DNA of 64,000 nt, from positions 372,001 to 436,000 of the forward strand of contig NIVC01000042.1 in the NCBI GenBank assembly GCA_002269645.1. Direction: 5' to 3'. Below the pieces are notes generated by a model that worked only from the letters and a program-made list of their open reading frames with translations, ran no database searches and was not told the DNA's origin. Positions within the stretch are counted from its first letter, which is position 1; each line of letters opens with the position of its first letter. The position numbers and the translations under genes are program-made. This document shows positions 1-47,700 of the stretch, piece by piece. This DNA comes from Macrostomum lignano (Eukaryota).

Positions 1-1331
1 TTAAGTCTAGCCAATTAAAATCCACGCTGATGAGATCAGCCAGTGGGCTTGTAGAGGTTGAGGTGGGTGCAGCACAAGGCCTGGAACAGTGTGTGCCCCG
101 CACAATCTTTCTTGTAGAAAAGGTGATTCTCACCTCCCCACTGAGTCTTTGAACCGCATTTCCTTTCACTTCCTATAGATTTTCTTTATTGTGTAGCATG
201 ATCATCAATGTCTAAATTGTTAAAATATAACCAAAATTTTGAAATGATTTTTGATGAATGGTGTCAAAATTTGAAATTGAAATCAAAATTATTTTGATGC
301 AAAATTAGTTTTGAAATTCGGAATATCGATATCGAAATCAAATTTTGATCCATCACTACCTTTGATGCCAAAAATCCAGTTGCTAATGAGATTTTCAAGG
401 GCCAAAAAAACCCATATGGCCCAAAAAATAAACCTAGCTCCTTTTTTCTATGAGTATGCCAGCTCATATTTCTTTTTTCTATTCCTTATCCTCTCCCTCT
501 TTTGGCTTGCAATCATCAGGGACTCCTAGGCACATTTTGCTTAGGCCCTGCGAAGCAGACCTAGAAGGGCAATCATTGTGCTAGGTTCTCAATTTGGCCT
601 TTGAGGTAAAAATTTTGCTGACTTTACATGTAAAAGCACTAGGCTTAGACACATGGCCAAGTATTGTATAGCTACTTAAGCAGGAATACACAAATCAAGA
701 CTCAAGCACACTGTGGTAGTACTGCATATAGTATAGTATTGCTATGGTATTGCTCAGTTTGCATGTCTGCCTATGCTTTTTTATAATGCATTGTACATTT
801 TAGTGTTAAGCATAGCAAGGCATGAAATGCCTTATACATATATGGCATGATCAATCAATGAGTGTGCATGAATTGTACATAATTATATACTCTGATCAAG
901 AGCATTACCAGATATCAAGATTCACTGTGGGGCTTTGATTGACCATGCACAATGAGGTAAAGGGGTGGAAATTAATGCATGCAGCCTACCAATTTTTACA
1001 ACTCTATGGGGGACTTTATAGCAGTCCTTAATGCATTTTGATAAAAGAAATACCCATGTTACATAGTCGCATGTATGGTCACATAGACATAACATACAAA
1101 TACTCAAGATTCAATAATGCCTGGACAATGCCTGAACATAACCTAGTGCATATAGGTGATGCATTTGCATAGAATATTTGCATTGAAACAAACATTTAAC
1201 CTATGGACATATAGTCTAGTATAGTGATGGACCAAATGTGGATTTTTGCAAGTTTCCGAAACCGAATCCGAATGTACAAAAAAAATCCGAATCCGAATCC
1301 AAATGTTTCCGAATGTAAGCAAAAAGTGTAA

Positions 1332-1430
1332 GGTAAACGGCGGGAGTAACTATGACTCTTTTAATTTACGAAAATGTCTCGTCATCTAATTAGTGCGCAC
1401 ATAAATTGACTGACAAGATTCCATCTCTCC
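1332..1430 (+). rRNA. 28S (LSU) rRNA pseudo-fragment, helix 69-71 region (R2/I-PpoI target), non-functional
   Basis: GGTAAACGGCGGGAGTAACTATGA-ctcttttaatttacga-AAATGTCTCGTCATCTAATTAGTG followed by a degenerate continuation (gcgcacataaattgactgacaagattcc). Matches the universally conserved eukaryotic 28S sequence as I recall it. Confidence 0.9.
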
Positions 1431-44700: not shown

Positions 44701-47700
44701 GCTGAGGGAGGAAAAAATCTCTTAAGAGATGAGAGAGAAGAGGAGATGAGAGGAAAGAGGAAAGAAAAGATGATGGATGAGATCAGAAGAGAGGAAAGAG
44801 GAAAGAGAAGAAAGTAGATGAGAGAAGAGAGGATAAAGAGGAGATGAGAGGAGAGTGAAGAGAGGAGAGATGAGAGAGTAGAAAAGAGAGGAGAGATAAG
44901 ATGAGAGAGTAGAGTGGAGTGGAGAGAGACGAGAGGAGAGATAAGAATGTAGAGAGGAGACAGAAGAGATAGGAGAGGAGAGAGGAGAGAGGAGAGGAAA
45001 GAGAGAAGGGATAAGGGATGAGAGAGAAAAGAAAAAGAGGATGAGAAGATTGAGGAATGGAGAGAATTTGCAAAGGCCTCAAATCTTAGTTTAACATGCA
45101 TTACTCCCATCTTTGCCTTTTTCCTAACTGTTAACAAGTTTTTGTTTGAGCATGACTTCAAATTTAGAATCTATGCAAAAATAGTTCCGGGAATTGGAAT
45201 TCAGTGGTTTCAAAATCTGTGGGTTTTCACAGCTTGTATCTCTACTGGATTCGTATTCTGCATCTGATGAGCCATCTGAATCAGGGCTCTCATCTTCCAT
45301 GCCAAATCGTTCTTGAGCTATAGGTCACACTGTATTCACTTCACTTACTTCTGGACATTCATGAATCATGACTTTTGTAGTATGCTCACTACACTGTACT
45401 GACAATTTACTAATTGCTTCATGCCGCCACTAGATGACATACTGATTAGCTGTTATAAAAACGCCGAATCTGCACGCAGCACTAATTAGCTGGCGAGGCA
45501 TTTAGCTTTTAAAATATGGTCATAGTTACTCCTGCCGTTTACCTAAAGTTTTTGCTAGGCTCTTTCATAGGTAAGTCGCATTTTTTATCGAAAACTAAGT
45601 CGCACGGCCAGCGTAATTTCAGAAGTTGCGCATGTATGTTGTAGCTCATTGACTCTGTAGCTCATTAACCCTTGTACTCTGTAGCTCATTAACCCTTGTA
45701 CTCTGTAGCTCATTAACTCTGTAGCTCATTAACTTTGTAGCTCATTGACTCTGTAGCTCATTAACCCTTGTACTCTGTAGCTTATTAACTCTGTAGCTCA
45801 TTAACTCTGTAGCTCATTAACTTTGTAGCTCATTGACTCTGTAGCTCATTAACCCTTGTACTCTGTAGCTCATTAACCCTTGTACTCTGTAGCTCATTAA
45901 CTCTGTAGCTCATTAACTTTGTAGCTCATTGACTCTGTAGCTCATTAACCCTTGTACTCTGTAGCTCATTAACCCTTGTACTCTGTAGCTCATTAACCCT
46001 TGTACTCTGTAGCTCATTAACCCTTGTACTCTGTAGCTCATTAACCCTTGTACTCTGTAGCTCATTAACCCTTGTACTCTGTAGCTCATTAACCCTTGTA
46101 CTCTGTAGCTCATTAACCCTTGTACCCTGTAGCTCATTAACCCTTGTACTCTGTAGCTCATTAACCCTTGTACCCTGTAGCTCATTAACCCTTGTACTCT
46201 GTAGCTCATTAACCCTTGTACTCTGTAGCTCATTAACCCTTGTACTCTGTAGCTCATTAACCCTTGTACTCTGTAGCTCATTAACCCTTGTACTCTGTAG
46301 CTCATTAACCCTTGTACCCTGTAGCTCATTAACCCTTTTACCCTGTAGCTTATTAACCTCAACCCTGTAGCTCATTAACCCTAGCCCTGTAGCTCATTAA
46401 CCCTTGTACTCTGTAGCTCATTAACCCCAACCCTGTAGCTCATTAACCCCAACCCTGTAGCTCATTAACCCCAACCCTGTAGCTCATTAACCCTAACCCT
46501 GTAGCTCATTAACTCTGTAGCTCATTAACTTTGTAGCTCATTGACTCTGTAGCTCATTAACCCTTGTACTCTGTAGCTCATTAACCCTTGTACTCTGTAG
46601 CTCATTAACCCTTGTACCCTGTAGCTCATTAACCCTTGTACCCTGTAGCTCATTAACCCTTGTACTCTGTAGCTCATTAACCCTTGTACCCTGTAGCTCA
46701 TTAACCCTTGTACTCTGTAGCTCATTAACCCTTGTACTCTGTAGCTCATTAACCCTTGTACTCTGTAGCTCATTAACCCTTGTACTCTGTAGCTCATTAA
46801 CCCTTGTACTCTGTAGCTCATTAACCCTTGTACTCTGTAGCTCATTAACCCTTGTACTCTGTAGCTCATTAACCCTTGTACTCTGTAGCTCATTAACCCT
46901 TGTACTCTGTAGCTCATTAACCCTTGTACCCTGTAGCTCATTAACCCTTGTACCCTGTAGCTCATTAACCCTAGCCCTGTAGCTCATTAACCCTTGTACT
47001 CTGTAGCTCATTAACCCCAACCCTGTAGCTCATTAACCCCAACCCTGTAGCTCATTAACCCCAACCCTGTAGCTCATTAACCCTAACCCTGTAGCTCATT
47101 AACCCTAACCCTGTAGCTCATTAACCTCAACCCTGTAGCTCATTAACCCCAACCCTGTAGCTCATTAACCTCAACCATGTAGCTCATTAAGCCCAACTGT
47201 GTGAGGCTTTATCTGACAATTTATTCTTGCTGTTCCAGTCTAGCATGCATAGATTTTATTGCATTGCCAATAAAAATTCTCATTCCCAGGTCCGACCTGC
47301 CCCTAGACCTGACCAAATCCCTGCTGGTACAACTGCGCGAATTGCTACGCATTCGGCCAGCTACGTCAAAGTGCATCGGCTTGGTCAACGCCCTGATGCG
47401 CGCCATCTTCGGCTTGAACTTGGCCGCGTTTCATTCCGCTCCAGTTGCCGCTGGCACCCCTTCCACACCATCGACATTGTCGGCAATGAGCAGCGTCGGT
47501 GCGTCGACTGTTCAGCAGCAGTCGTCGACTTCATCGACATCTGGCGTCGCCGCGTCGACACCGACCTCGATTCGTTCTCCGTCGCCGTCGCCATCGACCG
47601 GCTCCGTGACGTCAATGAGCGGTCGAGGCGGTCGCTATCCCAGCCTGACTCAATCCTTAGTGCTGGAACCGCTGCTTGTCGCCGGATCGGCGTTGACTAA

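Follow-up and report, generated by a model that had tools for sequence, protein, structure and literature searches.

Why do cut-and-paste transposons that lie outside the ribosomal DNA (rDNA) carry a piece of 28S sequence centred on the site of R2 retrotransposons? The question is raised by a 64-kb stretch of the Macrostomum lignano genome (contig NIVC01000042.1; the whole stretch is called the window below), which provides a sample of three module-bearing copies from two transposon families. An initial sequence-only reading had singled out three elements, here E1 to E3, each bounded by terminal inverted repeats (TIRs) and target-site duplications (TSDs). It had proposed that the 28S segment inside them is a functional or repeatedly captured module, for instance a landing pad for rDNA-targeting endonucleases. 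We find that this module derives from 28S rDNA, occupies a subterminal position in all three elements and is conserved unevenly, with two blocks kept and the centre between them decayed. We propose, with a probability of roughly 35% for the statement as a whole and judging from the sequence, that the module is an old 28S capture under constraint that would dock a protein of R2-type specificity at the DNA level.

Two conserved blocks around a decayed centre

The module is 63 bp long, reads GGTAAACGGCRGGAGTAACTATGA-N16-AAATGYCTCGYCAKCTAATTAGT and occurs once in each of E1, E2 and E3. It lies at 1332-1394 on the plus strand in E1 (block 1 at 1332-1355, centre at 1356-1371, block 2 at 1372-1394), at 29979-30041 on the plus strand in E2 (29979-30002, 30003-30018 and 30019-30041 in the same order), and at 45481-45543 on the minus strand in E3 (45543-45520, 45519-45504 and 45503-45481). 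The placement described earlier proved correct: the module starts 112, 100 and 97 nt from one end of E1, E2 and E3, respectively, and points inward, block 1 being the one closer to the terminus. Either half of the motif is present exactly three times in the 64 kb, with a mean of 0.00 across 100 dinucleotide-preserving shuffles, and an nhmmer profile run on the window recovers the same three modules (E ~1e-21). The only further match, AAAATGCCTAGTCAGTATATTAGTGC at 35044-35075 on the plus strand, resembles block 2 (nhmmer E=0.07), and upstream of it block 1 is missing; the match would be either a strongly decayed fourth module or due to chance in AT-rich DNA.

The proposed 28S origin held up, in that cmscan aligns all three copies to the Rfam family LSU_rRNA_eukarya (LSU, large subunit) at ~2247-2310, with the E1 alignment reaching 2335. 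E1 scores 48.7 bits (E=1.2e-10, 1264-1421), E2 20.5 bits (E=0.0055) and E3 17 bits (E=0.067), these E-values being computed on small search spaces. All three scores are under the family gathering cut-off of 50 bits and thus indicate rRNA fragments, not genes; no Rfam match at gathering score, and hence no full LSU rRNA gene, was found in the window. In E1, a decayed 28S continuation runs inward from the module at 1395-1430 on the plus strand, with 28/35 identity to the rRNA consensus GACGCGCATGAATGGATTAACGAGATTCCCACTGTCC and a local score of 17 that was reached by 0 of 2000 shuffles. At least ~100 bp of 28S was therefore captured, most of which has since decayed, and the similarity in E1 may also extend outward, with deletions. 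Changes in the decayed 28S flanks of E1 (1395-1430 and 1322-1331) are chiefly CpG to TpG or CpA (GCGCGG to GTGTAAGG, ACGAG to ACAAG), and the CpGs within the blocks are retained with the sole exception of GGCGGG to GGCAGG in family B, to which E2 and E3 belong.

With the rRNA consensus given by cmscan as the reference, 5 of 141 positions in the blocks (24 + 23 nt) depart from rRNA (1, 1 and 3 in E1, E2 and E3), against 24 of 48 in the 16-nt centre (6, 9 and 9; Fisher P=1.2e-12). Parsimony on the tree (E1,(E2,E3)) counts 20 events across the 16 sites of the centre and 4 across the 47 sites of the blocks (binomial P=4e-9). Block 1 of E1 equals rRNA exactly and its block 2 has 1 change; block 1 of E2 has one change, G-25 to A in the R2Bm numbering explained below, and its block 2 is exact; E3 has the G-25 to A change in block 1 and 2 changes in block 2, at +16 and +19. 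The centre measures 16 nt in all three modules, with no indel. Between E2 and E3, the blocks agree at 45/47 positions (96%), the flank from TIR to module at 78% and the centre at 8/16 (50%), and there is no alignable similarity inward of the module. The blocks are the longest identical E2/E3 runs at the module end, exceeding even the TIR. These figures uphold the constraint part of the earlier functional-module idea, and the 28/35 identity of the E1 continuation illustrates the level of decay that the blocks escaped.

Because no two of the centres are alike, a single ancestor that was already mutated cannot have passed on the contrast. The TSDs and TIRs of E2 and E3 are perfect, so that their divergence probably arose largely between propagating lineages and not by post-insertion decay; the blocks would then have been retained through selection for propagation. 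Short-tract gene conversion from rDNA was rejected as an explanation, since it would have restored the centre too. We consider an old 28S capture with constraint on the two blocks likely. Selection, a reading at the DNA level and the nature of the binder (R2-type protein, transposase or cofactor) are what we infer beyond the pattern itself.

RNA folds of the modules show no extra stability over shuffles (z = +0.7, -0.8 and +1.0), and the helix 69 (H69) hairpin is lost, its pairing being broken in the modules. The constraint thus acts on linear sequence and not on RNA structure, and a structured-RNA function was rejected on these grounds. A bipartite protein-binding site read as DNA would be the simplest reading of such a pattern, and we rate it at slightly better than even.

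Overlap with the R2 and I-PpoI target sites

Positions follow the R2Bm numbering of PMC10499050, checked on A-31ACGGCGGGA-22, C-7 and T-6TAAGG/T+1. In this numbering, block 1 spans -35 to -12, the centre -11 to +5 and block 2 +6 to +28, and the R2 nick site falls in the centre, as does most of the I-PpoI site. The R2Bm upstream recognition motif (RUM) has the consensus A-31WWWGCNNNA-22 (Wilkinson et al. 2023, PMC10499050) and is matched in 3/3 modules, as AACGGCGGGA in E1 and as AACGGCAGGA in E2 and E3, where the G-25 to A change sits on an N position. For the distance between RUM and nick site, R2Bm accepts no change beyond +1 (PMC10499050), and it is unaltered in all three modules. The R2Bm protein melts -6 to +5 of its target, with the duplex resuming at +6 (PMC10499050), which is the position where block 2 starts. 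DNase footprints of R2 ZF1-Myb (ZF, zinc finger) extend over -37 to -25, -21 to -15, -2 to +6, +8 to +15 and +17 to +20, and D-clade R2 ZF1-Myb binds both half-sites, explaining the ~60-bp protection by the full-length protein (Lee et al. 2024, PMC11204384). The footprints at -37 to -25, -21 to -15, +8 to +15 and +17 to +20 fall in the blocks, which thus coincide with the R2 binding half-sites.

The insertion-site motif of R2Bm (RASIN) follows the rule T-6TNANNT+1, and a T+1-to-A change abolishes nicking (PMC10499050). TTAATTT in E1 fits this rule, and TTATAAG in E2 and TTTTAAA in E3 fail it at -3 and +1, although these are rules of Bombyx R2 that may not match flatworm R2. The fit of E1 has a chance expectation of ~1 in 9 given its 6/16 changes, and by R2Bm rules only E1 would still be nickable. 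The 15-bp semi-palindrome of I-PpoI, CTCTCTTAAGGTAGC, is matched at 10/15, 7/15 and 7/15 positions in E1, E2 and E3, and its central AAGG is lost in all of them. With their cleavage core decayed, the elements lack an intact R2 or I-PpoI target and retain its two flanks. The R2/I-PpoI target proper, the label given earlier to the segment, lies in the unconserved N16. Conservation would thus appear to lie in the part of the R2 target that docks protein and not in the part that is cut.

Variation at this core also occurs in true rRNA genes. LSU rRNA genes of diverse microbial eukaryotes (metagenome loci L001-L011 and L013) have TTAATGTAGCC or TTAAAGTAGCC in place of TTAAGGTAGCC at the R2/I-PpoI core, and G at -2 is thus not universal.

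Carrier transposons and rival explanations

Re-reading all three regions confirmed the elements and their termini as first described. E1 (1222-2438, plus strand) is a non-autonomous cut-and-paste element of 1217 bp, delimited by its TIR and TSD and by an inverted-repeat search, and represents family A. Its TIR begins TAGTGATGG, the left terminus TAGTGATGGACCAAAT being the imperfect inverse of the right terminus TAGTGATGGATCCAAA; subterminal repeats of TCCGAATGT type occur at both ends, and a perfect 8-bp TSD, GTCTAGTA, is found at 1214-1221 and 2439-2446. E2 (29881-30147, plus strand) is a MITE (a miniature transposable element with inverted repeats) of 267 bp in family B, with a perfect 14-bp TIR, CATACATGCGCAAC, subterminal GTAAGTCGCA motifs and a perfect 8-bp TSD, CTTGGAGC, at 29873-29880 and 30148-30155. 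E3 (42232-45638, minus strand) is a non-autonomous family B element of 3.4 kb that carries the module at its right end. It shares the perfect 14-bp terminus CATACATGCGCAAC of E2, and its perfect 8-bp TSD, TTGTAGCT, lies at 42224-42231 and 45639-45646, its insertion site being a 17/24-bp satellite inside a huntingtin intron. By blastn, E2 1-164 aligns to the right end of E3 and E2 191-267 to its left end. E2 is thus built as the two ends of an E3-like element fused, with the breakpoint 3 nt past the inner edge of the module. The separation into two families also stood, since both the TIRs and the subterminal motifs differ (TCCGAATGT versus GTAAGTCGCA), and blastn with 7-nt words found no similarity between E1 and E2 or E3 outside the module.

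Coding capacity is scarce in these elements. E1 has no open reading frame (ORF) longer than 59 aa. E3 has an ATG-initiated 58-aa ORF (45124-45300, minus strand), the sole plausible ORF beside a module, ~180 nt inward of the module and on the same strand, for which protein libraries of 5.8 and 1.8 billion sequences yielded no homologue. No transposase or reverse transcriptase (RT)-like ORF was found anywhere in the 64-kb window. E2 agrees with the usual description of a MITE (<~800 bp, TIRs, TSDs, no coding capacity), and E1 at 1.2 kb and E3 at 3.4 kb are larger relatives without credible ORFs. All three have the 8-bp TSD of hAT elements. TAGTG at the terminus of E1 also agrees with what we take to be the hAT terminal consensus, 5'-YARNG, and CATAC in family B does not; besides hAT, family B may belong to other makers of 8-bp TSDs such as P.

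Further repeats accompany the carriers. A minisatellite of 20/21 bp, GGATTAGGTAAGTCGCAAAA, with ~36 copies at 42440-43170 (plus strand) in E3, is built on the family B motif GTAAGTCGCA and may be an enlarged array of transposase-binding sites. A foldback nested in E3 (43441-44409), separate from the module, has arms of 208 nt, 553 nt apart, whose 100% complementarity implies a very recent origin; by eye, its arm termini look mariner-like and its loop appears to contain a tandem duplication at ~43700-43990. A single end of another family A-like element, with TIR TAGTGATGGATCAAAA, lies at 300-358 on the minus strand. Its partner end is outside the window, which makes it uninformative on whether every copy carries the module.

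Did the two families acquire the module once or twice? Both families produce 8-bp TSDs, and E1 and E3 share 11/13 bases directly upstream of the module (AGCAAAAA.T.TA; P ~1e-5 for that register). These bases disagree with the Rfam rRNA consensus, and the match for this reason favours a single origin with transfer. The sequences thus hint at one capture followed by transfer between families and lend no support to the earlier notion of repeated capture; the shared bases could instead be native M. lignano 28S sequence and not a shared derived state.

We propose that an ancient capture placed ~100-160 bp of 28S rDNA in the subterminal DNA of non-autonomous cut-and-paste transposons, and that it was then inherited within M. 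lignano transposon lineages. Most of the captured sequence would have decayed, and the 24- and 23-bp blocks, exactly 16 bp apart, would have been kept by purifying selection on propagating elements. The module would act in cis as a bipartite, sequence-specific docking site, read as DNA, for the R2 protein itself or for a transposon-used protein of equal rDNA specificity, and would have no role as an efficient insertion or homing site. The MITE E2, which retains just two ends and the module, with its deletion breakpoint at the inner edge of the module, supports this proposal. That the binder has R2-type specificity is suggested by the coincidence of boundaries, and we hold this step only tentatively, at well under even odds. 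A still broader version, which strikes us as unlikely, is that transposons co-opted the two protein-binding halves of the R2 28S target in a cross-class interaction and passed the module between unrelated families as something useful. In such a co-option, either R2-type ZF-Myb proteins would be recruited or titrated by the transposons, or the transposon machinery would itself have gained R2-like rDNA specificity.

Several points weigh against the docking proposal. The sample is only three copies, two of them related to each other, in a single 64-kb window. The window showed no R2 element, transposase or other candidate for the binder, and the literature searched holds no record of R2 in Macrostomum, although several R2 lineages, including non-specific or relaxed-specificity families, are present in flatworms. 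We have no mechanism at hand by which R2-type binding would aid the propagation of a DNA transposon, and both families already have abundant subterminal motifs of their own, which are presumably where the transposase binds. The R2 footprint at -2 to +6 falls in the unconserved centre, and the footprints together span nearly the whole 60 bp, which makes their overlap with the blocks only a moderate discriminator. That the spacer is equally long in three copies carries no significance alone: with 7 gap columns per 100 in the flank alignment, we estimate that ~0.5-1.5 indels would be expected in the centre.

The blocks could instead be a cis element for the transposons' own machinery or for a non-R2 host factor, such as a site for a transposase or accessory protein, or a promoter or 5'-untranslated region (5'-UTR) element of the autonomous partner, in which case both the derivation from rDNA and the R2 overlap would be accidents of history. 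Conserved subterminal sequence in non-autonomous DNA transposons such as hAT and P elements is usually required for transposition. The module is confined to one end, within its outermost ~160 bp, and is oriented inward in every case, it is the innermost segment retained in the MITE E2, and the 58-aa ORF of E3 begins ~180 nt inward of it on the same strand. This ORF is without a homologue, however, and hence nothing marks a transposase exon; the module is common to two families with different TIRs and subterminal motifs; and it is left unexplained why, from a 3.4-kb rRNA, the piece kept should have the R2 site at its centre and half-site boundaries like those of R2. We regard this alternative as possible but doubtful. 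A genuine landing pad outside the rDNA, where R2 or another 28S-site-specific element or endonuclease inserts or cuts in the modules, would predict the opposite of what is observed, as the cleavage core of a selected pad should not be its least conserved part. E2 and E3 have T at -3 and G or A at +1, where T-to-A abolishes nicking by R2Bm, and the I-PpoI 15-mer is matched at just 10, 7 and 7 of 15 positions. None of the modules (0/3) is interrupted by an insertion, and the window has no RT-like ORF. E1 does have a wild-type RUM at the right spacing and TTAATTT at -6 to +1, obeying RASIN with a chance of ~1 in 9, and flatworm R2 families of relaxed specificity exist. With the core decaying fastest, the landing-pad option of the sequence-only reading loses its footing, both for homing endonucleases and for R2 in family B, and we judge a pad of any kind very unlikely.

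The module might also act at the RNA level as an rRNA mimic that shields its carrier from small-RNA silencing, serves as a sponge for small nucleolar RNAs (snoRNAs) or rRNA-binding factors, or gives rise to rRNA-like small RNAs. The block lengths of 24 and 23 nt are in the size range of small interfering and PIWI-interacting RNAs (siRNA/piRNA), and it is the linear sequence that is constrained, not the fold. Such a model has no need of fixed spacing, no promoter is known, and the modules occur in both orientations relative to huntingtin (E2 sense, E3 antisense), which leaves it little chance in our view. Little better can be said of a passive passenger, in which rDNA was captured once by chance as filler and the constraint is an artefact of three non-independent copies. 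Captured fragments are common in transposable elements (review PMC10946416), we have three copies only, and the 11/13 upstream match of E1 and E3 hints at a single origin. The gap in rate between the blocks and both the centre and the rest of the E1 28S is far past sampling error (P about 1e-9 to 1e-12), however. The centres differ among all three copies, so that no pre-mutated common ancestor can be invoked, and short-tract gene conversion from rDNA would have repaired the centre as well; a mere passenger is thus improbable. In summary, docking of a protein of R2-type specificity remains the reading we would put forward.

Genomic setting and known systems

The host locus is that of a huntingtin orthologue (36769-57571, plus strand) with large GC-rich exons, identified by Pfam matches and by searching a concatenated query against UniRef, where entry A0A1I8H4Q9 is 100% identical to several of its exons in the window. 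Two UniRef entries labelled 'Not1 domain-containing' and 'HECT domain-containing' are likewise pieces of the M. lignano huntingtin gene. E3 lies within a huntingtin intron and E2 upstream of the identified exons, with the E2 module sense and the E3 module antisense to the gene. A rabaptin-like coiled-coil gene (24333-25732, minus strand) is found upstream of huntingtin. Micro- and minisatellites are very dense, among them those at 10020-10900, 40320-41300, 13770-14400 and 45650-47020. They include (GTCT/CAGA)n runs of nearly 1 kb as well as 17/24-bp and ~38-bp types, some of which abut huntingtin exons. Clusters of the motif ACCAAGATGGCCACA at 28025-28095 and 32473-32514 are inverted and 4.4 kb apart with E2 between them. 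Together they may mark the two termini of a larger element that received E2, and no clear TSD was seen around them.

Beyond the window, an exact-pattern scan found no centre-diverged modules in viral, metagenome or prokaryote genome contigs. A relaxed metagenome scan returned 13 loci, which are true protist or fungal LSU genes with the natural TTAATGTAGCC variant plus one spacer repeat; none of them is a transposon resembling E1-E3. By eye, the module has stops in every frame of both strands, and translated searches are therefore unable to retrieve copies. The spacer repeat is a 256-bp tandem repeat (5.9 copies, 99% identical) of a eukaryote, on metagenome contigs Ga0179591_1145373 (L012, 1019-2514) and Ga0179590_1005955 (L008). 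It occupies the spacer ~700 nt downstream of the 28S 3' end, and each unit holds Rfam LSU 2193-2324, the R2-site region. It is a second, unrelated duplication of this 28S segment outside its normal place.

The earlier statement that no description of such elements was known agrees with our targeted literature searches, which brought up no DNA transposon with R2-site flanks maintained under constraint. A 2024 review of the interplay between rDNA and transposable elements covers Pokey spacer repeats, 5S-derived short interspersed nuclear elements (SINEs) and SINE28, and includes no DNA transposon with 28S coding sequence (PMC10946416). If the blocks are a docking site, they would connect an rDNA-specific retrotransposon system with cut-and-paste elements in a way open to direct testing, and would offer a natural experiment that separates the parts of the R2 target needed for binding from those needed for cutting. 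The latter question is timely, given current work to engineer R2 proteins for gene insertion. If the constraint vanishes once many copies are compared, the module would be one more captured fragment.

Among known systems, Pokey and its MITE derivative mPok (Daphnia, piggyBac) also form a DNA transposon family that includes MITEs, is linked to rDNA and contains rDNA-derived sequence. Pokey, however, inserts into the TTAA within this same 28S site, and the repeats that it carries come from the intergenic spacer (IGS), whereas E1-E3 lie outside rDNA in the window, have 8-bp TSDs instead of TTAA and carry the 28S coding sequence flanking that site. A Pokey or piggyBac identity was rejected because the TSDs are 8 bp and not TTAA and because the elements are located in huntingtin introns or close to them. 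SINE28 and the 5S-derived SINEs are likewise mobile elements with rRNA gene fragments conserved within a family (PMC10946416). They are retroposons, in which 5S heads are Pol III promoters and the SINE28 segment comes from another part of 28S, whereas E1-E3 have TIRs and TSDs, no promoter logic and bipartite conservation. We rejected an rRNA-derived SINE identity since each of the three elements is bounded by TIRs and by TSDs of a constant 8 bp. KolobokP elements, Kolobok transposons that encode an I-PpoI-like His-Cys box nuclease, set a precedent for DNA transposons borrowing rDNA-homing parts. They differ by their long terminal direct repeats and nuclease genes, and have no flatworm record and no reported 28S-like site. 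The idea of a KolobokP or I-PpoI-like nuclease was dismissed, given a degenerate I-PpoI site, TSDs of 8 bp and a different element architecture.

The R2 system itself offers two comparisons. Some R2 retrotransposons also have a diverged 28S copy near one end, linked to target recognition or priming; they reside inside rDNA with the copy downstream of the site, whereas the carriers here are DNA transposons. Compared with the R2 28S target (RUM, RASIN and a ~60-bp footprint), the module differs in lying inside DNA transposons and not in rDNA, in having lost RASIN in 2/3 copies and in holding no inserted R2. It resembles this target in having the same sequence and extent, from -35 to +28, in preserving RUM and its spacing to the nick, and in blocks that correspond to the ZF-Myb footprints.

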